From: Hydrolagus colliei
Taxonomy: Eukaryota
DNA: 64,000 nt
Direction of reading: 5' to 3'
NCBI GenBank assembly: GCA_035084275.1
Contig: CM068743.1
Span: 40,734,001-40,798,000, forward strand
Positions 1 to 57,358 of the stretch are shown piece after piece (position 1 is the first letter of the stretch; each line of letters begins with the position of its first letter). The translations under genes and the position numbers were made by a program. Below the pieces are notes generated by a model that ran no database searches, was not told the DNA's origin, and saw only the letters and a list, made by a program, of their open reading frames with translations.

Positions 1-971
1 GGTTACACTGGGCTTCAGAAACATGACTGGGTGTGAAAGGGCTTTCAAATTCTAACACAGATATTAGATTGGTTTGAACATTTGTGAGGCTGGTACTGGT
101 TTGGCATGGAGGGTGCAATAGAAATCCAAGTTGTTGTTATTGTTGTTGTTGGTACTATAATAATCGTGCATTCGATATAGCGGCTTAACACGTCTTCAAG
201 ACGTCTCACAACACTTTGTAGAATGTTCTCTTGATGTCTTTTATCATGCAGCACTGAGCTAGGGCTTCATTCAAACTGAATTTTGACTAGTTAGCTATTG
301 TGAGATGAAACTATCTTTGGGCTTCAGTTAAATTATCCTCCTCACTCCTGCACACCTTATATAGTGACTTGCAGGCCATCAGCTAATTGTTGAATGGCAC
401 TGATTCAGCAGTTTTGGACGAGAGCAAACGTCATAATGAAGGTTAGAGTATTATTAATAACAATAATCCTTGCATTTGATACAGCGTATTTCACATCTTC
501 TATACATCTCAAAGTGCCTCACAGAATATCCTGTAAAGTGAATTGACTGTATATTTGTGGACGAAACGTGACTGCCAATTGCCCACAGCAGTGTTGGATT
601 CATAGCTCAATCCTAAAAATAATTAAATGGTGATCAGGTATTGTAAATGTACAATAGACGTAAAAGCAAGTTCTGGTTATAATAGTATAAGTAGGTTCTA
701 GTTAGAACAGTGGGTTTTTGATCTATCGACACAGATTCAGTGATATAATAGGCTAGTTATATGGACTGTGACATCGTATGCTTTCGGCCACAGTATTGAT
801 GCCTATTTTAGCAGGAGTTTACGAGGATACAAAGTGGACATTATATCTATCACTATACTCCATGTGGTTTCCATCGAGTTGGATTGGATGAATCGTATAT
901 GCATTTGAATCAATTAGGTTTGGCTAATTTGTAAAATTTACCGTCAGAAATAAAGTTAGTGTCTCCCTCAG

Positions 972-1238
972 CGCTACCTGTGCTTTTCAAACGAGAGCTT
1001 CTGAACGTAGAGGCCGAAAAGGATGGTACAGCCACCCTAAGCTGTGAGGTTAGCAAACCTGACGTCCCAGTGACGTGGAGGAGGGGATCTGTAGAGCTTC
1101 ACTCCAGCGACAAGTATAAAATGAAGCAGAAAGGTTCCAGCGTTGAGTTAGTTATCCACAAGCTGAAGATGGAAGATGCTGGAGATTACACCTGCAGCAC
1201 TGGGGACCAGCAGAGCTCGGCTACATTGAAAGTCAAGG
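972..1238 (+). CDS. OBSCN: Exon 1 in window, Ig type A
   Basis: AG/GT-bounded, 267 bp, phase 1-1; LPVLFKRELL...DYTC...LKVK. Confidence 0.92.
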
Positions 1239-1423
1239 GTAGGAAGACAAATCTTACTCATTATAATTCCAATGTTGTTTATTTTCACTACAAAGTTTCT
1301 CATGGAAATCTTCATCGTCATCACACATGGCGTTTATTCTCCCTTACCTGTTCATGGACTGTCAGAAATCTCTTTAATATTAGGAAAGTGTATCATCATG
1401 AATAAAATTACTGTCTCCCTCAG

Positions 1424-1690
1424 CTCTACCTGTGCTTTTCAAACGAGAACTTCAGAACATAGAGGCTGAAGAGGATGGTACGGCCACCCTGAACTGTGAG
1501 GTTACTAAACCAGGCGTCCCAGTGACGTGGAGGAGGGGATCTGTGGGGCTTCACTCCAGCGACAAGTATAAAATGAAGCAGAAAGGTTGCAACGTTGAGT
1601 TAGTTATAGAGAAGCTGAAGCTGGAAGATGCTGGAGACTACACTTGCGATACAGGAGATCAGCAAAGCACTGCATCCTTGAAAGTGAAGG
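1424..1690 (+). CDS. OBSCN: Exon 2, Ig type A
   Basis: 267 bp, AG/GT, phase 1-1. Confidence 0.92.
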
Positions 1691-2004
1691 GTAGGACAAC
1701 AGTCCTCTATCTTCTATTCAATTCTATACTAATAAAATAATAATGTGTGTCTCTGTCTATCTGTCTGCCTGCCTGCGTCAGTCTCTCTGTATCTGTCTGT
1801 GCTTCAGGAAGTATCTCAATAACTGATGGACATAGAGACCGTATTTGTACCTCATCCGAAAGGTCTTGTGCCTGGGAGAGACAAGGGCCTAATTTTTTGT
1901 GGGGTGGGGGTTTGTTGTCACCTATCGTTCAAGATTTATGATCTAAACTGCATTTCAGTTTTGTGTTTCTTGCTGCAGTTTAGATCATAACCTTCTATTT
2001 AAAC

Positions 2005-2756
2005 TAGGGTCCGTCGATATGGAAATTTTCCGATTTAGATATATCGATGGGCTCATATCGAGATATACCGATATATCGATATTTTCGGGGTTTTTGTACT
2101 GCGCATGTGCGCACGTCGCGAGTGGCGCGTGCATTCGCGGTGCATGCGCATTCGGAGGTGTGTGCGCATTCGGGGCCTATCTCCTCAGGAGGTAAATATC
2201 TTTCTCTTTGTGTCTCACACTATCACTCTCTCCATCTCTGTGTTTTTCTGTCTGTGTCTCTGTGTCCCTCCTCTCTCACATCCTCCCCACCTCTCTCTCT
2301 CTCTGTTTCTCTCTCTCTCTGTCTGTCTGTCTGTCTGTTATCACATCCCCCCCATCTTCCCCCCCACCGTCTGTCCCCCCCCCCCCCCACCGTCCGTCTC
2401 TCCCCCCCCCCCCCGCCGCCGTCCCTCTCTCCCTGCCCCCCCCCCCCCCCCATCGCCGTCCCTCTCTTCCCCCCCCACCACTCCCCACCATCTCTCTCCC
2501 CCCACCACCCCACCCCTTGCATACCTGTATATTGTATTCGAGGACTATGAATACAATATGGCAGCTTGCACCTCGGTCTGTGCATTGTGTATAGAGATGA
2601 GCATTCTGGGTCTTGTAGTTCAGTGCGCGCACATTCCGATTTTTTCGATATATCGACTTTTTCGATATATCGATATTTTGAAAATGTTTATATCGGCGTA
2701 TCGATATGAAGATTATATCGGATATAATCAGTATATCGATATATCGCCGGACCCTA
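2005..2756. mobile_element. hAT-type non-autonomous DNA transposon, copy 1
   Basis: Ends TAGGGTCCG...CGGACCCTA; 8-bp TSD ATTTAAAC/ATTTAGAC; ATCGAT-rich subtermini; absent from the paralogous intron. Confidence 0.88.
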
Positions 2757-2864
2757 ATTTAGACCTTTGCTCCCTCCTCCTGGCTGGGATTTAAATGTTA
2801 AATGCTCCGAGATGCTGGCCTGGTGGCGCTATATAAATGCAGGTTTCTGTTGTTGTCTAATAAC

Positions 2865-3440
2865 TAATGGGGCAGGAGTTTCAATCTAGTGACTATAGCA
2901 GGAAGATATAGATAAAATGGTAAAGTGGGCAGACACATGGCAGATGACTAAGTGGAGAGAAGTGTGAGGTGATACATTTTAGGAGAAGAAATGAGGGGAG
3001 GCAATATAGGCTAGATAGTACAATTTTAAGGGGTGTGAGGGAACAGAGAGACTTGGGGATTTGTGTTAGTGACTCTTTGAAGAGTAGACAGGTAGACAAA
3101 GTTGTTACAAAGGCATATATGGCTTGATAAATAGGGGTATATAGTACAAAAGTCAGGAAGTGCTGACTAACCTCTATAAAACTTTGGTTAGGCCTCAGCT
3201 GGAGTACTGTATTCAATTCTGATCACCACATTGTAGAAAGAATGTTAAGGCATTGGAAAAGGTGCAAAGAAGGTTTACTAGAATGGTACCAGGATTGAGG
3301 GACTTCAGTTATCTAGATAGGCTAGGTTTACTCTCCTTGGAACAGAGAAGGTTGAGAGGAGACCTAATAGAGGTTTATAAAATCATGAGGGGATTCGACA
3401 GGGTGAATAAGGAAAAACTGTTTCCACTGGTGGGCGAGAA
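2865..3440 (+). mobile_element. CR1-clade LINE 3' fragment
   Basis: LEKVQRRFTRMVPGL...LEQRRLRGDLIEVYKIM, CR1 ORF2 C-terminal motifs; decayed. Confidence 0.88.
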
Positions 3441-3504
3441 TGGATTGCATTAAGAATCAGATGGAAATCTCTGCCATCACCAATTGAATTACTGTCTCCT
3501 CCAG

Positions 3505-3771
3505 CTCTGCCTGTGCTTTTCAAACGAGAACTTCTGAACGTAGAGGCTGAAGAGGATGGTACGGCCACCCTGAGCTGTGAGGTTACCAAACCTGACGTCC
3601 CAGTGACATGGAGGAGGGGATCTGTGGGGCTTCACTCCAGCAACAAGTATAAAATGAAGCAGAAAGGTTGCAGCGTTGAGTTGGTTATTCACCAACTAAA
3701 GCTGGAAGATGCTGGAGATTACACCTGTGACACTGGGGACAAGCAGAGCTCGGCTACATTGAAAGTCAAGG
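3505..3771 (+). CDS. OBSCN: Exon 3, Ig type A
   Basis: 267 bp, AG/GT, phase 1-1. Confidence 0.92.
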
Positions 3772-3955
3772 GTAGGATGACAAATCTTACTAATTATAAT
3801 TCCAATGTTATTTATTTTCACCATAAAGTTTCTCATGGAAATCTTCATCGTCATCACACATGGCGTTTGTTCTCACTACCTGTTCATGGACTGTCAGAAA
3901 TCTCTTTAATGTTAGGAAAGTGTATCATCATCCATAAAATTACTGTCTCCCTCAG

Positions 3956-4222
3956 CGCTACCTGTGCTTTTCAAACGAGAGCTTCTGAACGTAGAGGCTG
4001 AAGAGGATGGTACGGCCACCCTGAGCTGTGAGGTTACCAAACCTGACGTCCCAGTGAGGTGGAGGAGGGGATCTGTGGAGCTTCACTCCAGCAACAAGTA
4101 TAAAATGAAGCAGAAACGTTGCAGCGTTGAGTTAGTTATTCACCAACTGAAGCTGGAAGATGCTGGAGATTACACCTGTGACACTGGGGACCGGCAGAGC
4201 TTGGCTACATTGAAAGTAAAGG
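3956..4222 (+). CDS. OBSCN: Exon 4, Ig type A
   Basis: 267 bp, AG/GT, phase 1-1. Confidence 0.92.
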
Positions 4223-5273
4223 GTAGGACGTTCATCATTATTCCCCCAAAACTAAATCATTCTTGATCCTCAACATTAATAAATGTTTTACAAAGCTCAT
4301 CACCTTGTAACCTCAAACACAATCACTCAACCGTTTCCTTTCTTACTCGACGGTTACCCTGGGCTTCAGAAACATGACTGTTTGTGAATGGGCTTTCAAA
4401 CTGTAACACAGATATTAGATTGGTTTGTTTATTTGTGAGGCTGGTACTGGAGGGTGCTATAGAAATCCAAGTTGTTGTTGTTGGTACTATAATAATCGTG
4501 CATTCGATATAGCGCCTTAACACGTCTTCAAGACATCTCACAGCACTTTGTAGAATGTATCTTGATGTCTTTTATCATGCAGCACTGAGCTAGGGCTTCA
4601 TTCAAACTGAATTTTGACTAGTTAGCCATTGTGAAATGAAACTATCTTTGTGCTTCAGTTAAATTATCCTCTTCAGTCCCGCACACCTTATATTGTCACT
4701 TGCAGGCCATCAGGTAATGGTTGAATGGCACTGATCCAGCAGTTTTGGACGAGAGCAAACGTCATAGTGAAGGTTAGAGTATTATTAATAATAATAATCC
4801 TTGCATTTGATACAGAGTATTTCATGTCTTCTAACGTCTCAAAGTGCTTCACAGAATATCCTGTAAAGTGAATTGACTGTATATTTGTGGGCGAAACGTG
4901 ACAGCCAATTGCGCACAGCAAAATTGGATTCATAGCTCAATCGTAAAAATAATTAAATGGTGATCAGTTATTGTAAATGTACAATAGACGTAAAAGCAAG
5001 TTCTAGTTATAACAGTGGGTTTTTGGTCTATCGACACAGATTCAGTGATATAATAGATTAGTTATATGGACTGTGACATCCTATGCTTTGGGCCACAGTA
5101 TTAATGCCTATTTTAGCAGTTTACCAGGATACAAAGTGGACATTATATCTACCACTATACTCCATGTGGTTTCCATTGAGTTGGTTTGGGTGAATCGTAT
5201 GTGCATTTGAATTAATTAGGTTTGGTTAATTTGTAAAATCTACCTCCTGAAATAAAGTTACTGTCTCCCTCAG

Positions 5274-5540
5274 CGCTACCTGTGTTTTTCAAACGAGAGC
5301 TTCTGAACATAGAGGCCGAAGAGGATAGTACGGTCACCCTGAGCTGTGAGGTTACCAAACCTGACGTCCCAGTGACATGGAGAAGGGGATCTATGCGGCT
5401 TCACTCCAGCGACAAGTATAAAATGAAGCAGAAAGGTTCCAGCGTTGAGTTAGTTATTCACAAGCTGAATATGGAAGATGCTGGAGATTACACCTGTGAC
5501 ACTGGGGACCAGCAGAGCTCGGCTACATTGAAAGTCAAGG
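5274..5540 (+). CDS. OBSCN: Exon 5, Ig type A
   Basis: 267 bp, AG/GT, phase 1-1. Confidence 0.92.
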
Positions 5541-5724
5541 GTAGGAAGACAAATCTTACTCATTATAATACTAATGTTATTTATTTTCAACACAATGTTT
5601 CTCATGGAAATTTTCATCGTCATCACACATAGCATGTGTTCTCATTATCTGTTCATGAACTGTCAGAAATCTCTTTAATGTTGGGAAAGTGTATTATCAT
5701 GAATAAAATTACTGTCTCCCTCAG

Positions 5725-5991
5725 CGCTACCTGTGCTTTTCAAACAAGAACTTCAGAACGTAGAGGCTGAAGAGGATGGTATGGCCATCCTGAGCTGTGA
5801 GGTTACTAAACCAGATGTTCCAGTGATGTGGAGGAAGGGATCTGTGGGGCTTCACTCCAGTGACAAGTATAAAATGAAGCAGAAAGCTTGCAGCGTTGAG
5901 TTAGTTATTCACAAGCTGAAGATGGAAGATGCTGGAGATTACACCTGTGACATTGGAGACCGGCAGAGCTCGGCTACATTGAAAGTCAAGG
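5725..5991 (+). CDS. OBSCN: Exon 6, Ig type A
   Basis: 267 bp, AG/GT, phase 1-1. Confidence 0.92.
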
Positions 5992-7044
5992 GTAGGACGT
6001 TCATCATTATTCCCCCAAAACTAAACCATTCTTGATCCTCATCATTAATAAATGTTTTACAAAGTTCATCACCTTCTAACCTCAAACACAATCACTCAAC
6101 TGTTTCCTTTCTTTCTCGACGGTTACCCTGGGCTTCAGAAACATGACTGTGTGTGAAAGGCGCTTTTAAACTGTAACACAGATATTAGATTGGTTTGAAC
6201 ATTTGTGAGGCTGGTAATGGTTTGGCATGGAGGGTGCAATAGAAATCCAAGTTGTTGTTATTGTTGTTGTTGGTACTATAATAATCGTGCATTCGATATA
6301 GCGGCTTAACACGTCTTCAAGACGTCTCACAACACTTTGTAGAATGTACTCTTGATGTCTTTTATCATGCAGCACTGAGCTAGGGCTTCATTCAAACTGA
6401 ATTCTGACAGTTAGCCATTGTGAGATGAAACTATTTTTGTGCTTCATTTAAATTATACTCTTCAGTCCTGCACATCTTATATAATCACTTGCAGGCCATC
6501 AGCTAATCGTTGAATGGCACTGATTCAGCAGTTTTCGACGAGAGCAAACATCATAGTGAAGGTTAGAGTATTAATAATAATCCTTCCATTTGATATGTAT
6601 TTCACATCTTCTAGACGTCTCAAAGTGCAGAATAGAATATCCTGAAGTGAATTGACTGTATATTTGTGGGCGAAACGTGACACCTAAATGCGCACAGCAA
6701 AATTGGATTCATAGCTCAATCCTAAAAATAATTAAATGGTGATCAGTTATTGTAAATGTACAATAGATGTAATAGCAAGTACAGTGTACAGTTAGTTCAC
6801 AGATTCAGTGTCGATAGACCAATATATAATAATAGACAAGTTATATGGACTGTGACATCCTATGCTTTGGGTCACAGTATTAATGCCTATTTTACCAGGA
6901 TATAAAGTGAACATTATATCTACCACTATATTCCATGTAGTTTCCATCGAGTTGGTTTGGGTGAATCGTATGTGCATTTGAATCAATTAGGTTTGGTTAA
7001 TTTGTAATATGTACCGTCAGAAATAAAGTTACTGTCTCCCTCAG

Positions 7045-7311
7045 CGTTACCTGTGCTTTTCAAACAAGAGCTTCTGAACGTAGAGGCTGAAGAGGATGGT
7101 ACGGCCACCCTGAACTGTGAGGTTACCAAACCCGACGTCCCAGTGACGTGGAGGAAGGGATCTGTGGGGCTTCACTCCAGTGACAAGTATAAAACGAAGC
7201 AGAAAGGTTATAGCATTGAGTTAGTTATTCACAAGCTGAAGATGGAAGATGCTGGAGATTACACCTGCGATACAGGAGATCAGCAAAGCACTGCGTCCTT
7301 GAAAGTGAATG
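7045..7311 (+). CDS. OBSCN: Exon 7, Ig type A
   Basis: 267 bp, AG/GT, phase 1-1. Confidence 0.92.
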
Positions 7312-7739
7312 GTAGGACAACAGTCCTCTATCTATCTTTTCTCCTCTTCTGTATTAATAAAACAATAATGTGTGTTTCTGTCTGTCTGTTTGTCTGTCTG
7401 CGTCAGTCTCTGTGTATCTGTCTGTGCTTCGGGAAGTATCTCAATAACTGATGGACATAGAGACTGTATTTATACCTCATCCGAAAGGTCTTGCGGCTAG
7501 GACTGGCAAGGGCCTATTTTTGGGGGGGAGGTGGGTTGTTGTTATCGCCTATCGTTCAAGATTGATGACCTAAAATGCATTTCAGTTTTGCGCTTCTCGC
7601 TGCAGTTTAGATCATGACCTTCTATATAGACCTTTCCTCCCTCCTCATGGCTGGGATTTAGTCTTCGCCAATGTTAAACGCTCCGATTCGCTGGCCTGGT
7701 GGCGCTATATAAATGTAGTTTTCTGTTATTGTCTTAATA

Positions 7740-8627
7740 ACTGAGGGAGCAGGAGTTTCAATCTAATGACTGTAGCAAGAAGATATAGATAAAATGATAA
7801 AGTGGGCAGATATATGGCGAATAAAGTTTAATGCAGAGAAGTGTGAGATGATACATTTTGGGAGAAGAAATGAGGGGAGGCAATATAGGCTAGATAATAC
7901 AATTTTAAGGGGTGTGAGGGAAAAGAGAGACCTGGTGATTTGTGTTAGTGACTCTTTGAAGGTGGTAGGACAGGTAGACAAAGCTGTTAAGAAGGCATAT
8001 GGCTTGATTAATAGGGATATAGAGTACAAAAGTCAGGAAGTGCTGACTAACCTCTGTAAAACTTTGGTTAGGCCTCAGCTGAAGTACTGTATCCAATTCT
8101 GATCACCACACTATGGAAAGAATGTTAAGACATTGGAAAAAGTGAAAAGAAGATTTACTAGAATGGTACCGGATTGAGGGACTTCAGTTATGGGGAAAGG
8201 TTAGATAGGCTAGGTTTATTCTCTTTGGAACAGAGAAGGTTGAGAGGAGACCTAATAGAGGTTTATAAAATCATGAGGCGATTCGACAGGGTGAATAAGG
8301 AAATACTGTTTCCACTCGTGGGTGAATCTGTGACTCGTGGTCACAGATTTAAAATAGTTTCAAAACAAAGCAGAGGGGAGCTGAGGAGAAATGTTTTCAC
8401 TTAGCGGGGTGTTCGAATCTGGAATGCATTGCCTGAAAAGGTGTTGGAGGCCGATTCGATAACAGCTTTTAAAAGGGAATTAGATCTTTATTTCGGGAGA
8501 ACAGATCTGTTAGGTTATGGGGCGAGAGCTGGGCAGTGGGATTGAGTTGCTCTTTTTACAGAGCCGGCACAGACTAGATGGGCTGAATGGCCTCCTTTTG
8601 TGCCGTAAAATTCGATGATTCTATGAC
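7740..8627 (+). mobile_element. CR1-clade LINE 3' fragment with terminus (paralog of 2865-3440)
   Basis: Same motifs; ends GATGGGCTGAATGGCCTCC...GATTCTATGA. Confidence 0.9.
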
Positions 8628-8905
8628 TTGTGGACCTTACCTTTGATTTAAAGAATGAAGAAGGCTCAACAGAGAAAGACAATCTTCCTTATTCACAGTT
8701 AAGATCTCTATCTTAGTGCAGCAGATCCTGATTTAACTCCGAACAATGTAAAACTCATTCGGAAACAATAAAGTAGATAGAATTGAAGCTGCAAGTAGGA
8801 GTATAAATTGTATGGCAGGAATTCCTTACAGTGGATTTGAATGGATTGAATTCAGAATCGGATAGAAATCTCTGCCATCACCAATTGAATTACTGTCTCC
8901 CCCAG

Positions 8906-9172
8906 CCCTGCCTGTGCTTTTCAAACAAGAACTTCAGAATGTAGAGGCTGAAGAGGATGGTACGGCCACCCTGAGCTGTGAGGTCACCAAACCTGATGTC
9001 CCAGTGACGTGGAGGAGGGGATCTGTGGGGCTTCACTCCAGCGACAAGTATAAACAGAAGCAGAAAGGTTGCAACATTGAGTTAGTTATACAGAAACTAA
9101 CACTGGAAGATGCTGGAGATTACACCTGTGACATTGGGGACCGGCAGAGCTCGGCTACATTGAAAGTCAAGG
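8906..9172 (+). CDS. OBSCN: Exon 8, Ig type A
   Basis: 267 bp, AG/GT, phase 1-1. Confidence 0.92.
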
Positions 9173-9458
9173 GTAGGACTTTCATCATTACTCCCCCAAA
9201 CTAAATCATTCTTGATCCTCATCATTAATAAATGTTTGGGAAGGTTAGAGTATTCGATTCATAGCTCAATCCTAAAACTAAAGCTCATTCAAAGGTGATG
9301 GGTTATTGCAAATGTACAATAGATGTACAGTAGTAGCAAGTACTGTGTACTATTGGTACTAGTTATAATAGTGCGGTATTGGTCTATCGACACATATTCA
9401 GTGTTATAATAGACTAGTTATGTGGATCCTATGTTTCGGGCCACAGTATTAATGCCTA

Positions 9459-9942
9459 AAACAAAACACAAAATGCAGATGCTGGAAATCTGAAACAAAA
9501 ACAGAGAGATCTGGGAAAACTCAGCAGGTCAGGCAGCATCTATGGAGAAAGGAAATTGAGTCAACGTTTCAGGTCCATGACCCTTTGTCACAACTGGGGC
9601 ATGTTGGAAGGGAAGTTTTTAAGGACACGTTGGAGAGGCGGAGGCAGGACAAGGAAAGCAAAGGAGAAAAAGAAGACAAAGGAGAAAATGTGTTCATTGA
9701 TGAGTCGTTATCACAAGGTGATAACGACTTAATAGAAAAAGAGGTGGGTTGAAACAAAACTGGGGAGAAGAGGTGTTAATAGTGAAGAGTAGATAGATAA
9801 GATGCTGTTCCTCAAGCTTTCGCTATGGATCATTGGAACAGCGCAGGAGACCAGGATGGAGAGGGCAGACTCTGAAACGGAGTGTGAATTGAAATGGAGG
9901 GAGACTGGAAGATTAGGGTTGTCCTTGCGTACAGAACAAATG
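9459..9942 (-). mobile_element. 5'-truncated Penelope-like element
   Basis: TSD AATGCCTA at 9451-9458 and 9943-9950. Minus-strand decayed peptide SVRKDNPNLPVSLHFNS...RKLEEQHLIY resembles the GIY-YIG C-terminus of Penelope-like elements. Confidence 0.78.
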
Positions 9943-10116
9943 AATGCCTATTTTAGCAGGAGATTACTAGGATACAAAGTGGACATTATATCTACCACTA
10001 TACTCCACGTGGTTTCCATTGAGTTGGTTTGGGTGAATTGTATGCGCATTTGAATCAATTAGGTTTGGTTAATTTGTAAAATCTACCGTGAGAAATAAAG
10101 TTACTGTCTCCCTCAG

Positions 10117-10383
10117 TGCTACCTGTGCTTTTCAAACGAGAGCTTCTGAACACAGAGGCTGAAGAGGATGGTACGACCACCCTGAGCTGTGAGGTTACCA
10201 AACCTGACGTCCCAGTGACGTGGAGGAGGGGATCTGTGGGGCTTCACTCCAGTGACAAGTATGAAATGAAGCAGAAAGGTTGCAGCATTGAGTTAGTTAT
10301 ACACAAGCTGAAGCTGGAAGATGCTGGCAGCTATAGCTGTGACTCTGGGGACCGGCAGACCAGTGCCTCCTTGAAAGTGAACG
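10117..10383 (+). CDS. OBSCN: Exon 9, Ig type A
   Basis: 267 bp, AG/GT, phase 1-1; 3' end more diverged (AGSYSCDSG). Confidence 0.92.
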
Positions 10384-10732
10384 GTAAGAGATTCTTATTT
10401 ATGTAGTGCTGGGGTCTCGGTGGCTTCCCAGCTGTGGTCCTCATGACAGGGCAACAATGAAGGAAAATTCAATAAAGGAACAGTTATTTGGTTGGCCGAC
10501 CATAAAGGTTGGCAACCACTGGTGCAGGAGATTTAAACCCTTGTCATTGTCAACCGGTGAGGTTCCGTTTTTGACAGGACTGTGTGAGCTGTGTATTTCA
10601 TGATCAACAATCATATCCATACCCAGCAACCCAGCAGGAATGCCCATGCTTTTATCTAGCGATGCTTTGCAGTTGGTAATTAATTTCTTATCCATTTGAA
10701 GTAAAGTTTTCACATTGTAAGTTGTGCCAATT

Positions 10733-11160
10733 AGAATCATAGAATCTTACGGCACAAAAGGAGGCCATTCGGCCCATCGAGTCTGTGCCGGCTCTTTAAA
10801 AAGAGCAATTTAACCCCACTCCCCAGCTCTCTTTCTATAACCTCGCAAACCCGTCTTCCCCAAATAATGTCTATCTCTCTTTTAAAAGTTGTTATCGAAT
10901 TGGCCTCCACCACCTCTTCAGGCAATGCATTCCAGATTCGAACAACTCGCTGAGTGAAACAAATTCTCCTCAGCTCCCCTCTGCTTCTTTTTGAAACTAT
11001 TTTAAATCTGTGACAATGAGTCACTGATACTCCCACCAATGGAAACAGTGTTTCCCTATCTACTCTGTTGAACCCCTCATGATATTAAGAACCTCTATTA
11101 GGTCTCCTTGCAACTTTCTCTGTTCCAATGAGAATAAACCTAGCCTCTCTAGCCTTTCCT
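10733..11160 (-). mobile_element. CR1 LINE 3' fragment
   Basis: FTQRVVRIWNALPEEVVEA; (ATTCT)-type tail. Confidence 0.88.
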
Positions 11161-11171
11161 TATTGAACTGA

Positions 11172-11830
11172 TAAGAACATAAGAATTAGGAGCAGGAGTA
11201 AGCCATTTGGCCCTTCGAGCTTGTTCCGCCATTCAATAAGATCATGGCTGATCTTCTCACCTAACTCTAATTACCTGCCCCATCCCCATATCCCCTAATC
11301 CCCCTATTTAAAAAAAAAATCTATCAGTCTCAGTCTTGAAAATGTTCAAGGACTGAGCATCTACAGCCTTCTGGGGGTAGTGAATTCCATAAATTCACTA
11401 CCCTCTGAGTGAAGAAATGTTTCCTCAACTCTGTTCCAAAAGGCTGACCCTTAATTTTAAGACTGTGACCCCTGGTTATAGATTCTCCTACCAGAGGAAA
11501 CAGTCCCTCAGTGTCTACTTTATCTAGCCCTTTAAGAATCTTATATGTTTCAATAAGATACCCCCTAATTCTTCTGTACTCCAGAGAATACAGCCCTAGT
11601 TTATTCAGCCTATCCTCATAGGTCAGTCCCCTCATCCCAGGAACTAACCTAGTGAATCTACGCTGCACCCCCTCTAAGGCAAGTATGTCATTTTTTAAAT
11701 AAGTAGACCAAAACTGCACACAGTTCTCTAGGTGCGGTCTCACAAAGCCCTATACAGTTGCAGCAAGACTTCCCTATTCTTATACTCTAAACCTTTTGAA
11801 ATGAACGCTAACATGCCGTTCGCCTTCTTA
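11172..11830 (-). mobile_element. CR1 LINE 3' fragment, second subfamily
   Basis: RPHLENCVQFWS...LEGVQRRFTRLVPG; CTTATGTTCTTA tail. Confidence 0.88.
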
Positions 11831-12312
11831 GTTGCTTGCTGCACCAAGGTACTATCTGTAGATAGGTGCATTTAGTGAGTTAATAGGAGTACCAAGGTTA
11901 TACTATAATAATGATGATCCTTGCATTTGATACAGCCTTTATCATGTCTTCTAACCATCTCAAAGCGCTTGGCAGAATATACTATAGAGTGAATTGACTA
12001 TATGTTGTGTGGGTGAACAATCCTGTTGTAATGCCAGTCAGTGTTGGAAACCGGGTGTACCCTGGTTCAAGATAGCAGTGGTTTAAGCAGATTTGTGCTA
12101 ACTGAGTTCCAACTTTATTTCAGTTCTTTATTTTGTCCATCAAGTTCTAGGCACAGTTCAAACCATACAATGAATTACTTCAAGAAATCCTATTTGATCC
12201 TGCCTGAAATCTGAACCACTTGAAGGGAGAGTTATATCCCTCCAATGCACATTTCAGCTCCATTCTTTCTAGTCCTAACATGGCCGTGCGTTTCTCACCC
12301 TAAATCACGCAG

Positions 12313-12579
12313 CCTTGCCTGTTCTCTTCAAACAAGAGCTTCAGAACCAAGAAGCAGAAGAAGGGGATTCAGCGACGCTGCTCTGCCAGTTGACCAAAGC
12401 TGATGTTCCAGTGGAGTGGAGACAGGGTTCTGTGGTCCTCGAAGCTGGGGACAAATACGAAATGAAACAGATAGGTTCCCACGTCGAGTTGTTGATCCGC
12501 TGTTTGAGAGTTGAAGACACCGGAGATTACACTTGTTGTACGAGAGATCACCAGACCTCTGCCTTTCTCCGAGTGAATG
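12313..12579 (+). CDS. OBSCN: Exon 10, Ig type A
   Basis: 267 bp, AG/GT; LPVLFKQELQNQEAEEG. Confidence 0.92.
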
Positions 12580-16154: not shown

Positions 16155-16421
16155 CTTTGCCTGTGTTCTTCAAACAAGAGCTGCATAGTGAAGAAGCTGA
16201 AGAAGGTGACACTGTCACTTTTCATTGTGAACTGACTAAACCTGGTGCCCCAGTACACTGGAGAAAGGGGGCTGTCGTTCTTAAGCCCAGTCACAAGTAT
16301 GAAATCAAACAAGTTGATGTTTTTGTTGAGTTATCAATCCATCATTTGAAAACAGAAGATTCTGGAGAATATGTATGTGATTCTGGGGATCAACAGACCA
16401 CGGCTTACTTGAAAGTTAATG
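16155..16421 (+). CDS. OBSCN: Exon 12, Ig type A
   Basis: 267 bp, AG/GT. Confidence 0.92.
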
Positions 16422-17545
16422 GTAGGAACAGTTAATGGTGAAAAATTAAACACAAATTAATATGTTTTCACTGAGTGTGGTTCAGTAGATGTACTAAAGA
16501 GTTTGGTTCAGCAGTGGTTTGGATATTTTCACTTCATAACCATGAGATGTTTTAACTGTGTATTGCACTAACTTCCCCCCCGCTTGACTTGTTGGTTTTT
16601 CCTGTTGTGTAGCAGAATTCAACAACTATTAACCGTTGCAACACCAACAAAAAAATTATATTTGCAAAGTGCCTTTCACTTCGGGAGAACGTCCCAAGGC
16701 GCTGAAGTCAGGGATTACTACCTGAGTGAGCCGAATGGCCTTTTTCTGTGCTGTTGATTTCAGTGTTTGAGTTGAGCTTAGAATGTAATTCATTAAAATA
16801 GACTCCCAAGAAACTACTTATAATTAAAATCTTAATAGTTGATGTTTTTTCTTGTCCACACCAGTCTATCCACCGAAGTACAATATTCTCTGTCTAATCA
16901 TACCATTTTTTTGTTGCATTGATGCTTCTCTATCATAATCCTTTCTCTAACCATTAATTAATTTTGTGAAACAAAGACCAAAGTTGGTGCTTTTTAAAAA
17001 TTATTGCTGTTGTATACAGTACAGTATCTCTTGAGTGGACAAAAATCTGTTTGTTTCTTACGTGTTGAATGACACATGCGGTGTCTCAAACCATTCCATT
17101 CTAACAATCTGTTGCTTGGATTTCCAGGTGTAGGGAAAAAATGATAAACATTTAATAATAATAATCCTTGCAGTTGATATAATGTGTTATCATGTCATTG
17201 AGATGTCTCAAAGCGCTTCACAGAATATTCTGTCTGTTAATTTAATTTACATACGTTACCACTTAATGAGTATCTTTAATTTACCTTTAATATTGCTGAG
17301 AGATCAGTTACTTGAGAATGGGCAGCATCTATGGAGAATGGAAAGTGAGTTAACGTTTCAAAAGGACATTGACCTGAAAGGTTAATTCACATTCCTCTCT
17401 CCGTAGATGCTGCCTGAGCTGTTCCCAGCCACTACTGTTTCTAATTTCCAATTTCCATCATCTGCAGTATTTTGCCTTTTAATTACTTGAATTGCAATCA
17501 TAAATCTCAAGTTGTTCCCTTTTGTCATCTTTCCCATATTGCCAG

Positions 17546-17818
17546 AGCCAGACATTACTATAGTGGAGGGATTGAAGAATGTTAAAGTGTTTGAAGATGA
17601 AGATGCCTTGTTTAAATGCCAAGTTTCTCACGAAAATGCACGTGATGTGCAATGGAAACTTGGATACGCCACACTTCAGAACAGCTCGCTTAATGAGATC
17701 TCTGTGGAACGTGGAAAGATTCATTTGCTGCATGTTCGGAAAGTCGCAGAAGAAGATTCTGGGACCGTGACCTTCCGAGTTGGACCTTATGTTTCGTCAG
17801 CGGAGTTGACTGTGAAAG
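17546..17818 (+). CDS. OBSCN: Exon 13, Ig type B
   Basis: 273 bp, AG/GT; EPDITIVEGLKNV...DSGTVTF. Confidence 0.92.
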
Positions 17819-17923
17819 GTAACCAACGTCCAACACCAAAGGAAGAGGCAAAGGACAGAATGTTCTCCTGGTGACTGAGAACAGTGAAGAATTTTGCCCA
17901 AATTTCGGCAGATTGATGTGAAG

Positions 17924-18250
17924 AATAATAATAACGATAATAATTCTTGCGTTTGATATAGCGCTTTTCATGTCTTTTAGATGTCCCAAAGCGTTTCACA
18001 GAATATACTGTAAAATGAATTGATATATTTGTGGGCGAAATGCAGCAGCCAATTGTGCACAGCAGCAATTGTCCCCACTGTTTGTCCCCACAAATAGTCG
18101 TGGGTTGATATGACCAATATATTGTTTTTTTGAGGAATTATTATTAGGCATGTGGAGGAAGCAAACTTTCCTACGGTTTCACCCTGTCTGGATTAAAACA
18201 CAGGTCTCACGCTTGTAAGGCGAGTGTTCTAACCACTGAGCTACAGGAGC
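17924..18250 (-). mobile_element. tRNA-headed SINE, full length
   Basis: A/B-box-like head, shared body, hairpin and (ATT)n tail. Confidence 0.85.
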
Positions 18251-18622
18251 TCCACTGTAATGATTTGGATTTATTTGGATATAGAATAGAGTTTTCAACA
18301 CATTTCTGTGCAATGTTTTCCTTGTAATCCTTGCATTTGATAGAGTACCTTATCGGGTGGTTCTGCTGTCTCAAAAGTGCTTCACAGAGAATGCAGTGAA
18401 GTGAACTAACTATGTAATTGGTGGGCGGAACGCGGCAGCCAATTGCACACAGCAGCATCCCACAAACAGTCGTGGTTTGAGTGACCAAATGATAACCAAA
18501 TTATAAGGGATTATAATTGATTTTTGTTATGTATAGGGTGAAGCTGTTTATCATGGCTGCACTGTATAATTATTTTTTAAAAAGCAGAGAATTTTTAACC
18601 ATTTTATATTGCTCCATTGCAG

Positions 18623-18889
18623 CTACTCCAGTCTACTTCAAACAAGAACTTCAGCACACAGAGGCTGAGGAGAATGGAACAGCAACTCTCCAGTGTGAGC
18701 TCTCTAAACCCAGTGGAGCAGTGACATGGAGCAAAGGGTCACTAGCAATTGCTTCAGATAAGAAGCACAAGGTGAAGCAGGAAGGTCCTCTCCACACGCT
18801 ACTGATTCACAACCTGGAACCAATGGACTCAGGAGATTACACCTGTGCTTCTGAGGGTCAACAGACAACAGCTTCTGTAACCGTCAAAG
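18623..18889 (+). CDS. OBSCN: Exon 14, Ig type A
   Basis: 267 bp, AG/GT. Confidence 0.92.
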
Positions 18890-19548
18890 GTAAGGAGTTC
18901 ATGGAATAAAAACCAGGGATTCATGGAATAAACCATGGAATAAATACATTTTTATTCATAAAAATAATAATTCTTGCACTTGATATAGCGCTTTTTACGT
19001 CTTCTAGATGTCTCAAAGCGCTTCACAGAATATAGTGTCAAGTGAATTGACCGACCATATTTGTGGGCGAAATGCGGCAGCCAAATTGCTCACAACAGTG
19101 TCCCACAAACAGTCAAGGAAGTGGGATTAGGGGAAAAGGTGGGGGAAAGATGGCAAGGGGAGGGGTCAGGTAGGGGGAAGGAGAGCAGGAAAGCTGACTG
19201 TTTACTTGTGGGAGAAAGTGTTTTGTTTCTCCACAAACAGTGGTGGGCTGAGATGACCAATTTATTATTTGTCTTTCGACTGAACAAAAAGATTTTCTTA
19301 ACTGAAAACAACTAACTGGAGTGCTCAGGGGGTCAGAATGCATCTATATAGAGAGGAAATTGGGTTAACGTTAACTCACTTTCCTCTCTCTCTCTATAAA
19401 CTGCTGCCTAACCTGCTGAGTGTTCCCAGCAACTTCTGTTTATATTGCAGATTTCTAGCATTTGTAGTATTTTGCTTTGTATAAACATGCTTCTGGTTAA
19501 GGGCAAAACATTTGACGATATTTAATTAAATTTTATTTTTGTCCTCAG

Positions 19549-19815
19549 CCCTGCCTGTACTTTTCTTGAAATGGCTTCAGAATGAGCAAGCAGAGCATGG
19601 TGGCACAGGCAAACTGCGCTGTGAGCTGACTAAACCTGGCGCTAAGGTGGAATGGAGGAAGGGCAGTCTGGTAGTTCATGCTGGTGACAAGTATGAAATA
19701 CTTCAGAAAGGAGCGGTTGTCGAGCTACTTATCCACAATTTGACACCAGAAGACACAGGAGAATACACATGTGATTCTGGGGACCAGCAAACTACTGCCT
19801 GCGTAACGATCACAC
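19549..19815 (+). CDS. OBSCN: Exon 15, Ig type A
   Basis: 267 bp, AG/GT. Confidence 0.92.
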
Positions 19816-20289
19816 GTAAGAAACAAAATCACCCCTGCTTTAACACTTCCTGACATGAAAAGACAAGTAGGATTCTTTTTATCAACAGCCAGTCTTGGCT
19901 TCAATTGAGAAAGATTAAATCGCAACTTGAAGCCCTCCCGGATAACTCATGGCGTTAACCTCAAGACCAATCAATCTCTTAAAATTTAACATCAGAGTCC
20001 TGTAGTGTAGTGTTTACTCCACTCGCTGTGCAAGCGAGAGGACCCAGGTTCGATTCCTGGGCAGGGCGGAACCTTAGGCATGTTTCCTTACACCACACTT
20101 ACACACATACACATACGCCTCTGTTTACCTAGCAGTAAGTAGGAGCCCGGTTGTTAGTCGATTGGGGGAATTGCTTTATGGGGGTAATAATCCCCTCAAT
20201 CAAAAATCTGGTCAGAGCGTTGGGGCATTCACAGGTGGATTGATTTGCAGGCGTTTGAGTTGTCCTGAATGTGTGGTTTGTATTGACAG

Positions 20290-20562
20290 AGCCAGATGTA
20301 AGAATTGTTGAGAGTTTGAAGGACGTGGAGGTATTTGTGGGCGGGGACGCTGTGTTTGAATGCAGAGTCTCCCAGGAGAGGGCGGGTGATGTGCGGTGGA
20401 GCCTGGGAGGCATCGAGTTGCAGAATAACGAAATGAACACGATTTCAGTGAAGAAAGGCAACGTTCACAGCTTGATGCTGAGAAAAGTCACACGGGATGA
20501 TTCCGGTGCCGTCATCTTTACGGTTGGGAAAGACACATCTACGGCTGAATTGAAAGTCAAAG
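20290..20562 (+). CDS. OBSCN: Exon 16, Ig type B
   Basis: 273 bp, AG/GT; EPDVRIVESLKDV. Confidence 0.92.
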
Positions 20563-21187
20563 GTAAAAAAGATTTCAACTCTTGGTGTACATCTCCCAAG
20601 TCTGACCCTACTTCAGTGGTCGGCTCAAGCCCCATGTTGTCTACTCCAATGCAGGGCTGGTGGTGTCCATTGTTTGAATTGCTCCCCTTTTTTTGGTGAG
20701 ATGTTAAACCGAGGCATTGTTGTGTAGGTGTAAGTGTAACCCTAACCTTATCTAAACCTTCACCACTCAGATCAAAGACTTAACTGAAGCGTAGAACCTC
20801 ATCAATGCTGCATGCCCCCAGCTCCACATTGGAGCATCAGCCGAGATTAACTAACTTGTGACGTGAGGCTTGAATCCACAAGCTTGTTTCCCAGAGGCTA
20901 GACTGCTAACCATTGAGCTCGCCTGATGACACACACTCTAGTTTATACTGCGGTATGAATTTATAATGGCAATAATTCTTGCCTTTGACACAGCGCCTTA
21001 TCGCGTCATTGAGATGTCTCAAAGCACTTCACAATGAATTGTAAAGTGAATTGACTGTTTCTTTTGTGGGTGGAACGGCATTTCATGAAGGATGCACTAT
21101 ACAAATGTACTTTTGTTGTTGTTGTTGCTTCTCTCAGTATCAGATTTGCCAAATGCCAAGATTGTTATTATCACTTTGGTTTTTCAG

Positions 21188-21454
21188 CCACTCCTGCAAG
21201 TTTCACACTACAACTGGAAACCACAGAGGCAGGGGAGACCGGAACCACAAGTCTACACTGTGAGCTCTCACAACCTGAGGCTTCTGTCACTTGGAAGAAA
21301 GGATCAGTTACAATCCAGCCAAGTGGGAGGCATGAAATTAAACGTGAAGGAGCCACACAAACGTTAGTGATTCGTGACTTGAAACTGGAGGATTCAGGAG
21401 AGTATTCCTGTAGCTCTGGGGATCAACACACTGCAGCTTCCTTAACTGTGAAAC
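21188..21454 (+). CDS. OBSCN: Exon 17, Ig type A
   Basis: 267 bp, AG/GT. Confidence 0.92.
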
Positions 21455-22139
21455 GTGAGTTCAAAGCCAAATGAGAATCTCCCTTTAGGTTTGTGTTTTA
21501 GTGATTTGGGATTTTAAAATTCAACCTGAACAGGCAGGTAGGACCTTGGATTAAAGTCTAATCCGAAGGACAGAACAACAACAAGCAACAAGTGTGTGAG
21601 TGTGTACAGTGCCTTTCACATTGGGAGGATGTCCCAAGGTTCTGGCCAGTCAGTGTTTCAGACCTGAGCTGGGGTTGGGATCGGGGAGGGTGGAGGCAAG
21701 GGAGGTGAAGTGGGTGACCGATGGCACGGTCGAAGAGAGGGTCTTGAGGTGGGACGTGATGGAGACCAGGGAGGGGGCAAGGCGGAGGAATTACGAGATG
21801 GAATTTGCCAAATTGATGACTTCACCTGTCGGTGTTGGAGTTGGGGAAATAGAAATAATCAAACTCAACGGTAACACTAATAAGTAATAAAAATAATCTT
21901 TGCATTTGATGCAGCGCCTTATCATGTCTTCGAGTAGTTTCTAAGTGCTTCACAGAATATACTGTAAAAGTGATTTGACTGTAATTTGTGGCTGAGACTT
22001 GTATGATTTGAAATTGCTCTTTGCGATTCTTGAATATAATTGGGTCAAATTTAGGTGACTACATACATGCACACACACACATACATATATAAGCAGACCA
22101 CTTTCAACTGTTTTGATATTTTCTAACTAACTTTTGCAG

Positions 22140-22345
22140 ATACCAAAACAGAAATGACTGGGAACACTCAGCAGGTCAGGCAGCATCTATGGAGAAAGGA
22201 ATAGTGAGTCAATGTTTTGGATCCATGATGCTTTGTCAGAACTCTGAGGTGTTTCCTCTCTCCAGATGCTGCCTGACCTGCTGAGTGTTCCCAGCCATTT
22301 CTGTTTTGGTTTCAGATTTCCAGCATTTGCAGTATTTTGCATTAT
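22140..22345. mobile_element. Fold-back Penelope-derived element (relatives at about 17300-17480, 19310-19490, 42775-42970)
   Basis: About 40-bp inverted repeat CAGAAATGRCTGGGAACACTCAGCAGGTCAGGCAGCATCT, matching the tail of the 9459-9942 element. Confidence 0.7.
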
Positions 22346-22390
22346 TGTTTAGCTTTTGCAGATGATTAATATCTTTGCTTTACTGTGCAG

Positions 22391-51226: not shown

Positions 51227-51254
51227 GTAACTCTCAGACACTAAAGGTGTGCGT

Positions 51255-57239: not shown

Positions 57240-57358
57240 CACAGGCCTCAGCCTTACCCCCTCCTTCCCCATTTTCAGGTCACACCTGAATACGTTCCTC
57301 TTGGCACTGTCAAGCGCACAAATATTTGCCGACTGAGAATTTGTCTGTTTTGTTCCAG

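Follow-up and report, generated by a model that had tools for sequence, protein, structure and literature searches.

The triplicated region of nebulin is a known case of intragenic exon-block duplication similar to the one described here. In human obscurin, a central block of Ig domains has been known since 2001. The domains of its clusters Ob9-18 and Ob36-42 were described as "extremely homologous" tandem Ig domains, and the clusters were read as recent duplications or expansion of exon units (Young et al. 2001, PMC2196875). Exons 48-56 of human OBSCN are skipped during development, and many central Ig exons are skipped after birth (PMC11871629). In titin, the super-repeats of the middle Ig region and the PEVK triplication consist of symmetric-phase module exons multiplied in tandem together with their introns (PMC12241362).

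Here we analyse a window of 64,000 nucleotides (the whole stretch of DNA under study) from the cartilaginous fish Hydrolagus colliei, which begins with an array of similar Ig exons. We put at about three in four the probability that this array is the 3' part of the homogeneous Ig-exon block at the centre of OBSCN and is subject both to recombinational homogenization and to purifying selection. Beside the human block, the array is an ordinary feature, neither new nor especially young.

Results

Predicted domains and homology assign the gene to obscurin (OBSCN), the gene named in the original prediction. Pfam I-set matched the sampled exons, and 21 exons in a row, all symmetric in phase and 267-279 bp long, form an open frame of 1879 amino acids. 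The encoded product is a long, linker-free chain of I-set domains, with most exons supplying a single domain. The downstream order is Fn3 - IQ - Ig - SH3 - DH - PH - Ig (Table 1). The short DH exons gave no Pfam match by themselves; they align at 64-90% with the DH region of Pristiophorus obscurin. The best full-length representatives for the IQ exon were the obscurins of Latimeria, Vulpes, Monodelphis and others, and the top 120 matches of exons 10-21 were all obscurin (120/120). By tblastn, the window is colinear with Pristiophorus obscurin from about residue 3160 to 7231, with 70-90% identity in the unique parts. These best matches and the colinearity identify the gene as obscurin rather than titin, OBSL1, SPEG or hemicentin. 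The closest Ig fragments, from Callorhinchus milii (82-86% identity), have intron-derived residues in common with the window. Exons 10-21 are only about 50% identical to the elasmobranch and coelacanth obscurins. By these matches the source is a cartilaginous fish and probably a chimaera near Callorhinchus.

Table 1. Features of the array and of the downstream gene, in window coordinates
Feature	Coordinates	Strand	Description
Intron X0	1-971	+	type X, cut by window edge; 88.8% to 4352-5273; also aligns to X6
e1	972-1238	+	267 bp, phase 1-1, AG/GT sites, open; Pfam I-set E=9e-16
Intron S1	1239-1423	+	type S, 185 bp; K2P 0.056 to S3, 0.106 to S5
e2	1424-1690	+	3' half of 'B' type, common to e7
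Intron Y2	1691-3504	+	type Y; LINE-like ORF fragment at 3253-3453
hAT-like non-autonomous DNA transposon	2005-2756	.	752 bp; in Y2 only
e3	3505-3771	+	267 bp, AG/GT, open
Intron S3	3772-3955	+	type S, 184 bp
e4	3956-4222	+	267 bp, AG/GT, open
Intron X4	4223-5273	+	type X; tail of tRNA-derived SINE at 4776-4920
e5	5274-5540	+	267 bp, AG/GT, open
Intron S5	5541-5724	+	type S, 184 bp
e6	5725-5991	+	S before, X after, as for e4
Intron X6	5992-7044	+	type X; 87.8% to X4 over 1081 columns, K2P 0.083
e7	7045-7311	+	hybrid: upstream flank X-type, 3' half e2-type, then Y
Intron Y7	7312-8905	+	type Y; full LINE 3' fragment kept
e8	8906-9172	+	Y before, as e3; X after, as e4 and e6
Intron X8	9173-10116	+	partly type X
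Last homogenized tract	9942 to about 10300	+	final 175 bp of X8 and about the first two-thirds of e9
e9	10117-10383	+	chimeric: array-type 5' part, old unique 3' part
First unique intron	10384-12312	+	inverted LINE fragment at 10732-11171
Exon 10	12313-12579	+	first diverged Ig exon beyond the array
fn3	about 38000-38350		Pfam
IQ + I-set	40584-41888		Pfam
SH3_2	54634-55065		Pfam
NGEF-type PH	60554-60820 and 61458-61742		Pfam

The array comprises nine exons on the + strand (972-10383), each of exactly 267 bp, in phase 1-1 and open in the same frame, with a pyrimidine-rich acceptor ending in cag and the donor GTAGGA or GTAAGA. Each encodes one I-set Ig domain. Spliced onto the next 12 exons, e1-e9 give an uninterrupted frame of 1879 codons. 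Nine open exons of this kind, each preserving the frame, had been predicted, and both points are borne out by these sites and this splice. Self-BLAST of the window gave array matches down to E=0.0, so chance is excluded. The description of the exons as nearly identical in DNA was overstated, since DNA identity among e1-e9 is 85.4-95.1% (mean 88.9%, with 85 of the 267 sites variable and K2P distances of 0.05-0.16) and protein identity is 80-94%. Neighbours e3 and e4 are the closest pair, at 95.1% in DNA. Adjacent domains within e1-e9 are 81-94% identical in protein, a run at least as alike as the 72-90% of the human clusters, as compared with 60% at e9/e10 and 22-62% beyond. Exon 10 has 64-68% DNA and about 63% protein identity to e1-e9. 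The Ig core, with both cysteines, the tryptophan and the tyrosine-corner motif, is kept in all nine copies; the motif reads EDAGDYTC in eight of them and EDAGSYSC in e9. The best single-domain PDB matches of e1 were human obscurin Ig domains. Because window position 1 falls within an X intron, the array probably continues upstream, and nine copies is a lower bound.

The introns of the array sort into three recurring types, X, S and Y, in the order X-e1-S-e2-Y-e3-S-e4-X-e5-S-e6-X-e7-Y-e8-X-e9. The types and their order are as originally predicted, but the last X, between e8 and e9, is X-like at its ends only. Its first 65 bp are 94% and its last 177 bp 92% identical to X, a 207-bp middle part (9252-9458) is 74% identical, and the remainder, with a short mobile element at 9459-9595, is unrelated to X. 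K2P distances within intron types are 0.056-0.106; X0 lies at 0.068 from X4 and 0.097 from X6. Periodicities of 1769 bp and 4351 bp were found, the unit being 1, 2 or 4 exons. From exon 10 onward, self-BLAST of the window found no mutual matches of introns other than interspersed repeats, as expected from the prediction that these introns are unrelated to each other.

Several insertions mark the introns. About 40 copies of the SINE tail found in X4 are present across the window, so the tail was already part of the X unit before that unit was copied. Blocks 1691-2004, 2757-3437 and 3438-3504 of Y2 are 86.6, 88.2 and 92.5% identical to Y7. The transposon in Y2 ends in inverted repeats (TAGGGTCCG...CGGACCCTA) and is flanked by a target duplication of 8 bp (ATTTAAAC/ATTTAGAC); the corresponding site in Y7 is empty. 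A 513-bp part of Y7 (8326-8838), belonging to the LINE, is absent from Y2. The hAT-like element thus entered Y2, and the 513 bp were lost, later than the Y duplication. A relative of the transposon lies at 52088-53592. Y7 8184-8623 matches the reverse complement of 10732-11171 at 85%.

The irregular order had been taken to need several unequal crossovers, and the exons themselves support this. All pairings of intron types occur around the array exons, and grouping the copies by their 5' halves gives a different result from grouping them by their 3' halves. In the four-gamete test, 45% of informative site pairs were incompatible (43 informative sites). The observed value of a PHI-like statistic, 0.347, lay below the permutation mean (0.453), and none of 5000 permutations was as low (p<0.0002). 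Exons e6, e7 and e8 are hybrids. The 3' half of e2 is 90% identical to e7 vs 82-84% to the other copies. Over the tract from 9942 to about 10300, a sliding comparison with the other X-exon units gives 88-96% identity; this drops to 68-82% in the last 80-90 bp of e9, and there is none beyond. The 5' half of e9 is 89-95% identical to the other copies and its 3' half 80-83%. The array is therefore a mosaic and e9 is a chimera. Mosaic copies, hybrid exons and a high-identity tract on an older background are direct traces of exchange, and the tract can be taken to mark the 3' edge of the array.

Across the array copies dN was 0.080 and dS 0.281, giving an omega of 0.28 (bootstrap interval 0.18-0.45). 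The copies are under purifying selection. Exon K2P distances are no lower than those of the adjacent introns (0.06-0.11), so the constraint is modest or the copies are of mixed ancestry. Because the frames are open, the splice sites are present and omega is below 1, e1-e9 are probably included in the mRNA and the modules expressed.

We parsed 11 other gnathostome obscurins, and in all 11 highly similar Ig domains form one cluster or two. For nine of the proteins the best within-protein Ig identity was 93-100%; for Rhincodon (whale shark) and Stegostoma (zebra shark) it was about 82%. In sharks, ray and coelacanth, the cluster to which e1-e9 map immediately precedes the e10-e12 orthologues on their N-terminal side, and e10-e21 map colinearly to the post-cluster domains of Pristiophorus, Scyliorhinus, Narcine and Latimeria. 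The homologous clusters are Ig33-41 in Pristiophorus, Ig33-43 in Scyliorhinus, Ig31-41 in Narcine and Ig29-44 in Latimeria, at the same position in the protein; their 9-16 copies, counted from single predicted isoforms, are lower bounds. Within a cluster, identity averages 84-95% for the window, Pristiophorus, Scyliorhinus and Narcine, and 74-77% for Latimeria and Carcharodon, as compared with 55-84% between species.

In domain trees, which were built from 88 columns and leave many forks without resolution, e1-e9 form one clade (SH-aLRT 98), and the clusters of Narcine (100), Scyliorhinus (99) and Latimeria (99) each form their own. The flanking domains group across species (SH-aLRT 96-98). 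Paralogues within a species are thus closer than arrays of different species, and the flanks are one-to-one orthologous. The last Pristiophorus cluster copy groups with a Scyliorhinus copy (SH-aLRT 91), which suggests that the array is older than the split of those two sharks. We regard such species-specific clusters at the same position as marking a conserved site where the copies undergo concerted evolution or turnover. Species-specific clades are predicted equally by concerted evolution and by independent expansion in each lineage, starting from a single ancestral exon or a few of them; only boundary-copy orthology and similar copy numbers speak for an ancient array over independent expansions.

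Discussion

Each 267-bp phase 1-1 exon supplies one complete I-set domain of a linker-free tandem-Ig chain. Gain, loss or skipping of a module would therefore shift the protein length by 89 residues and leave the frame intact. We propose that unequal crossing-over and short-tract gene conversion repeatedly swap exons together with their intron flanks, generating the mosaic of three intron types and the hybrid exons, and making copies more alike within species than between species. Purifying selection holds every copy as a working Ig domain. Annotated isoforms of the coelacanth (Latimeria) and the gar (Lepisosteus) differ only by multiples of 89 residues in the homologous cluster. By analogy, it is plausible that obscurin length varies by splicing in this species. 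Copy number may tune the length or elasticity of the protein.

The original prediction called the array young, and this we do not uphold. A young, lineage-specific burst would mean that a single ancestral Ig exon underwent several recent duplications together with its intron, in this lineage alone, that the other clusters arose independently, and that neither an ancient array nor gene conversion was involved. The copies do group by species in the tree, introns were duplicated together with exons, and the human clusters have been read as recent duplications (Young et al. 2001, PMC2196875). However, the copies have diverged by 5-16%, with the intron distances given above, and the transposon insertion and the 513-bp loss postdate the duplication of Y. 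Duplication alone does not yield the old background of X8/e9 (68-82%) under a tract of 90-96%, and the four-gamete incompatibility is pervasive. Shark, ray and coelacanth each have a cluster of 9-16 copies at this position, and a boundary copy is orthologous in two sharks. We therefore consider a recent burst unlikely, though it is the strongest of the alternatives. Because same-position clusters of similar size occur elsewhere and group by species, the array is better read as an old, continually homogenized block than as a recent invention, and we infer that homogenization acts on a multi-copy array of ancient origin and not on expansions that arose afresh each time.

The copies might instead be decaying relics that are rarely or never used in mature obscurin mRNA, as the skipping of many central human exons after birth (PMC11871629) and an exon divergence no lower than that of introns would allow. 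With open frames, both splice sites and intact Ig core residues in 9/9 copies, an outcome improbable for neutral sequence at such divergence, and with an upper bootstrap bound of 0.45 on omega, we give this idea little credence. Assemblies often contain errors at tandem repeats, and a shorter array could in principle have been inflated to nine copies by mis-assembly or by the merging of haplotypes, as the original prediction itself allowed. Haplotype duplicates are expected to be about 99% identical or more, yet the copies differ by 5-15% with private substitutions. The indels of their introns are likewise specific to single copies; one of them is a transposon that has a target-site duplication of its own and whose site is empty in the sister copy. 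Positions 1-10383 contain no runs of N. An artefact is therefore very hard to credit. An old block of working Ig exons, homogenized by exchange, remains our preferred reading.

The array resembles the human clusters Ob9-18 and Ob36-42 in having one linker-free Ig domain per exon, in lying within the central tandem-Ig region, ahead of Fn3 and IQ, and in within-cluster protein identity (72-90% in human vs 80-94% here). The extra exons of the human clusters are in alternative use. The array differs in its cartilaginous fish host and in that its intron-level anatomy (three types, periodicities, hybrid exons and a conversion tract) is resolved here; in the literature consulted we found no intron-level cluster analysis for the human obscurin gene. 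Between the copies of the array and those of human or shark, similarity does not exceed that of ordinary orthologous domains.

The elasmobranch and coelacanth clusters are like that of the window in position relative to the e10-e12 orthologues, in similar copy number and in forming species-wise clades. However, the elasmobranch clusters are far more uniform (mean protein identity 93-95%, with many copies at 98-100%, vs 84% in the window). In elasmobranchs, moreover, four extra, unique domains (Pristiophorus Ig42-45) separate the cluster from the exon 11 orthologue, where the window has exon 10 only.

As in titin, there is one module per exon, with transposons inside or beside the units (PMC12241362). 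The Ig duplications of titin are super-repeats of 6 or 10 domains in which adjacent domains are strongly different, unlike the similar neighbours of the array. The Dscam clusters of arthropods, like the array, are tandem, similar Ig-coding exons that evolve by duplication and homogenization. The array sequence gave no sign of mutually exclusive splicing; Dscam exons are mutually exclusive and encode half-domains, whereas those of the array are consecutive, cassette-type exons that encode whole domains.

Array exons and introns

Long direct repeats are limited to the first 10.4 kb of the window (64,000 bases, 43% G+C), as found by self-BLAST. This part holds nine 267-bp Ig exons of obscurin (OBSCN), e1-e9, separated by three recurring intron types, X, S and Y, which we number by the preceding exon (X0, S1 and so on). 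Reading of the junctions upheld the coordinates, length, phase and open frames predicted for the exons. All nine share one common open frame with phase 1-1, and their splice sites consist of a pyrimidine tract ending in cag at the 5' side and GTAGGA at the 3' side (GTAAGA after e9). The predicted order, X-e1-S-e2-Y-e3-S-e4-X-e5-S-e6-X-e7-Y-e8-X-e9, also holds, with the fourth X intron (X8) being X-like at its ends only. The description "nearly identical" was too strong. Pairwise DNA identity is 85.4-95.1% (mean 88.9%) with 85 of 267 positions variable, and pairwise protein identity is 79.5-94.3%. The array has at least nine copies, because position 1 of the window falls within an X intron.

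Coordinates of array exons and mobile elements in the window, and Ig-domain clusters compared
Feature	Position	Strand	Description
e1	972-1238	+	267 bp, upstream intron X, downstream S
e2	1424-1690	+	267 bp, upstream intron S, downstream Y
e3	3505-3771	+	267 bp, upstream intron Y, downstream S
e4	3956-4222	+	267 bp, upstream intron S, downstream X
e5	5274-5540	+	267 bp, upstream intron X, downstream S
e6	5725-5991	+	267 bp, upstream intron S, downstream X
e7	7045-7311	+	267 bp, upstream intron X, downstream Y
e8	8906-9172	+	267 bp, upstream intron Y, downstream X
e9	10117-10383	+	267 bp, upstream intron X, downstream unique
SINE copies, examples	26544-26848, 51253-51571, 56917-57242, 45882-46170
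SINE tRNA-like heads	19997, 33204, 46102, 57168		called tRNA by Rfam and ARAGORN
Short-element copies	17321-17480, 19324-19480, 22139-22350, 42785-42907		matches on both strands
Pristiophorus cluster	Ig33-41		mean within-cluster protein identity 93.6%
Scyliorhinus cluster	Ig33-43		mean within-cluster protein identity 94.5%
Narcine cluster	Ig31-41		mean within-cluster protein identity 93.0%
Latimeria cluster	Ig29-44		mean within-cluster protein identity 73.9%
Window cluster	e1-e9		mean within-cluster protein identity 84.4%

The S introns measure 184-185 bp and differ by K2P distances of 0.056-0.106; X0, X4 and X6 align end to end (K2P 0.068-0.097). Every full X intron contains a 145-bp SINE tail. 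Since this tail is common to the X introns and its family has about 40 copies in the window, the SINE was present in the unit before the unit was copied. In X8 the resemblance to X is limited to the first 65 bp (94%) and the last 177 bp (92%). Identity to X is 74% over a 207-bp stretch, and the remainder is unrelated and includes a small mobile element. Y2 and Y7 have three blocks in common (86.6-92.5% identity), and Y2 is without 513 bp of a LINE 3' fragment that is kept in Y7. Identities of 53-75% obtained for X8 and the Y introns by global MAFFT alignment were rejected as artefacts of large indels, and BLAST block maps were used instead. About 40-45 bp upstream of the exon are common to all intron types. 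From exon 10 (12313-12579) onward the intron matches found by self-BLAST are interspersed repeats only, as expected from the prediction that these introns are unrelated.

Mobile elements

An insert of 752 bp in Y2 has terminal inverted repeats (TAGGGTCCG...) and shows an 8-bp target-site duplication; at the corresponding place Y7 has an empty site. By these features the insert appears to be a non-autonomous transposon of hAT type, acquired after Y was duplicated. A larger copy of this element (2005-2756 in Y2) lies at 52088-53592; its terminal repeats are again TAGGGTCCG, and it has a separate 8-bp target duplication, CTAATTTG. The interior of this copy (about 52391-53347) consists of an expanded C/T-rich minisatellite; as a result, three frames contain long but spurious proline-rich ORFs (418-518 codons). 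The SINE family is tRNA-Ala-derived, about 320 bp long, and its approximately 40 full or partial copies in the window lie in both orientations. A short element of about 100-160 bp is found at 9459-9595, in the non-X part of the e8-e9 intron; the both-strand matches suggest a palindromic MITE. LINE-like fragments at 7624-8623 and 10732-11171 (reverse strand) contain open ORFs resembling a reverse-transcriptase tail, with 85% mutual identity and no match in Pfam. One LINE-like copy was already in the ancestral Y intron.

Gene identity and downstream exons

In Pfam the array exons are I-set Ig domains, and among single-domain PDB entries they are matched best by Ig domains of human obscurin. A tblastn search of the window with an array-type Ig query detected another series of Ig exons, which are diverged. 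Twenty-one exons (972-29893) splice to an open 1879-codon frame. They are followed by three Ig exons, an Fn3 exon, a large IQ + Ig exon (40584-41888) and Ig exons, and then, 3' of those, by SH3, DH exons, two PH exons and another Ig. Among 1.8 billion representatives, the best full-length matches of the IQ exon are proteins named obscurin, from coelacanth, frog, fox and opossum. Pristiophorus (sawshark) obscurin is colinear with the window over residues about 3160-7231, and the unique parts are 70-90% identical. Single DH exons had no Pfam match and were confirmed through alignment to shark obscurin. The Pfam, PDB and IQ-exon matches and the shark colinearity all agree with the assignment to obscurin made in the original prediction; titin, OBSL1 and hemicentin are ruled out by the downstream architecture and the best matches.

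The sole N run of the window (59007-59185) ends 3 bases before an open frame (59189-59548), which holds a DH-domain exon aligned to shark obscurin from 59225. The gap thus lies in the intron just upstream of this exon, or the exon is clipped. In exons 12-19 (16155-23403) two Ig subtypes alternate, an older interleaving downstream of the homogeneous array. The exons of the "DVQW" type (17546, 20290, 22391 and 23125; 273-279 bp) are 22-26% identical to their neighbours and 48-56% to each other.

Exchange between copies

Every combination of neighbouring intron types occurs at the exon flanks. The 3' halves of the exons form three groups, {e1, e3, e4, e5, e6, e8}, {e2, e7} and {e9}, and the 5' halves are all 85-95% alike. 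At the 43 parsimony-informative sites, all four gametes are found in 45% of site pairs. Incompatibility is lower between neighbouring sites (0.347 vs. 0.453 permuted) in our own PHI-like test, and none of 5000 permutations of site order gave a value as low. Long-range repeat periods of 1769 bp (e-S-e-X) and 4351 bp (X-e-S-e-Y-e-S-e) were observed, and no single unit accounts for the order of the introns. The closest S pair, S1 and S3 (K2P 0.056), lies within one putative 4-exon unit, and the closest exons are the adjacent e3 and e4 (95.1%). These two relationships contradict a simple history of a pure 2-exon or a pure 4-exon unit and indicate that the history is reticulate.

At the 3' edge of the array, a tract from about 9942 to about 10300, comprising 175 bp of intron and the first two-thirds of e9, is 88-96% identical to other units. 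After about 10300 the rest of e9 is 68-82% identical, with nothing beyond, and X8 further upstream of the tract is 74% identical by BLAST. Such a profile is that of an older copy overlaid by a conversion or crossover tract. The several unequal crossovers originally proposed are supported by this tract, the mosaic order and the site incompatibility, and gene conversion should be added to them.

Comparison with other species

Eleven full-length obscurins were parsed with an HMM made from the window's own Ig exons; the comparison with other cartilaginous fishes is at the protein level. One or two clusters of highly similar Ig domains were found in all eleven. Within one protein, the best identity reaches 93-100% for nine of the eleven, with Rhincodon and Stegostoma at about 82%. 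The best match of e1-e9 is the cluster immediately N-terminal of the e10-e12 orthologues. The window array (84.4%) is less homogenised than the Pristiophorus, Scyliorhinus and Narcine clusters, and cluster identity between species (55-84%) tracks phylogeny. A maximum-likelihood tree built from 86 domains places e1-e9 in a single clade (SH-aLRT 98). The clusters of Narcine (100), Scyliorhinus (99) and Latimeria (99) are each a clade of their own, and flanking domains of different species fall together as orthologous groups (96-98). The last copy of the Pristiophorus cluster pairs with a Scyliorhinus copy (91), a hint that the array may already have been in the common ancestor of these two sharks, and that edge copies may escape homogenisation, as e9 does in the window. 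The Scyliorhinus torazame gene spans more than 100 kb.

A length-filtered search with the 800-aa e1-e9 protein returned partial models only, at no more than 50% identity, from birds, reptiles and fish. Full-length obscurins were found with a 4990-aa query, the window's spliced protein repeated, of which only residues 802-1879 were scored, so that the padding affects the length filter only. Over exons 10-21 the elasmobranch obscurins are 47-53% identical and the coelacanth obscurin 49%. A single array exon is matched most closely by two fragments from Callorhinchus milii, P0297 and P0298, with identities of 86% and 82%; both also carry translated intron sequence that agrees with the intron ends of the window. 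The window encodes neither of them. The two are nearly identical to each other, and their substitutions AAL, DAP and YGMKQKGSRVELL occur in none of the nine window copies. They are probably further array copies from outside the window, or from a sister species; further copies would lie upstream of the window, where a second sub-family with this signature is expected. Together with the elasmobranch values, these fragments suggest a holocephalan source, probably C. milii or a close relative. In three elasmobranch obscurins (P0304, P0306 and P0303) the cluster is separated from the exon 11 orthologue by four Ig domains that are unique and orthologous among these proteins (Pristiophorus Ig42-45). 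The window has exon 10 alone at this place, hence the number of domains beside the array also differs between lineages.

Origin of the array

Both cysteines, the tryptophan and the tyrosine-corner motif are kept in all nine copies (EDAGDYTC, but EDAGSYSC in e9). By the Nei-Gojobori method, dN is 0.080, dS 0.281 and omega 0.28 (codon bootstrap interval 0.18-0.45). On this evidence e1-e9 look like constrained, working domains, and it is unlikely that such intact copies are dead relics. An assembly artefact is very unlikely, given the 5-15% divergence between copies, the copy-specific indels and the transposon with its own target duplication. For exons and introns alike, matched distances are 0.05-0.14, and one transposon insertion and one deletion have occurred since duplication. 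These observations suggest that the array is not very young, and the youth ascribed to it in the original prediction is not demonstrable. Assuming a neutral rate of about 1e-9 per site per year, the intron distances of 0.056-0.106 would correspond to about 30-50 million years. According to a statement quoted in PMC12241362, the elephant shark evolves slowly; such a source would give a larger age.

A purely recent burst explains neither the old background under X8 and e9 nor the conserved position of the cluster. The comparison with chondrichthyan OBSCN suggested at the outset, run on proteins, placed the cluster at the same site. These data are better explained by concerted evolution, or by continual turnover at a conserved site, than by a recent invention. 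The clusters may also be independent expansions in each lineage. A bolder reading, held tentatively with a probability of about 0.4, is that the central Ig cluster is an ancient multi-copy array, dating at least to jawed vertebrates, and that each lineage has homogenised it on its own over more than 400 million years. In the vertebrates compared, adjacent domains that are 81-100% identical persist at a single conserved site. Examples are e3-e4 at 94%, e8-e9 at 83% and a shark pair at about 99%. Ig neighbours that share more than about 70% identity reportedly tend to co-aggregate (Wright et al. 2005, cited in PMC12241362). Because the cluster values are far over this level, homogeneity would be either selected for or specially tolerated if the array is indeed ancient. 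This raises the question of why obscurin tolerates or needs near-identical Ig neighbours, which are thought to risk misfolding. The chimaera array offers a slow-motion record of the process, in its hybrid exons, three intron types and a conversion tract ending inside an exon.

Relation to known obscurin clusters

Our literature search for concerted evolution or misfolding in obscurin found nothing specific. Clusters themselves have been described. Human obscurin has two clusters of "extremely homologous" Ig domains, Ob9-18 and Ob36-42, whose copies are 72-90% identical in protein and whose neighbours differ by as few as 20 bases (Young et al. 2001, PMC2196875). Each domain is encoded by one exon, ten extra Ig exons are missing from the cDNA, and a splice variant replaces Ob10-16 (PMC2196875). 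Human exons 48-56, all Ig-coding, are developmentally skipped (2025 study, PMC11871629). We compared annotated isoforms of coelacanth (Latimeria P0305, P0322, P0121 and others) and gar (Lepisosteus P0308, P0310, P0367 and P0400). All differences fall inside the homologous cluster (Ig30-48) and their lengths are, with few exceptions, multiples of 89 residues, in predicted models whose gap placement is ambiguous within near-identical repeats. Length variation of the array through splicing would be in line with this known biology. The Ig block accounts for OBSCN models that fragment or vary in this region, and any copy count taken from one window or one isoform is a lower bound. Young et al. (2001, PMC2196875) ascribed the human clusters to recent duplications aided by the exon structure. 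The array documents this known peculiarity of a giant muscle gene at the DNA level in an early-branching vertebrate; it is a new example, in a chimaera, of a known property of obscurin and not a new kind of element.
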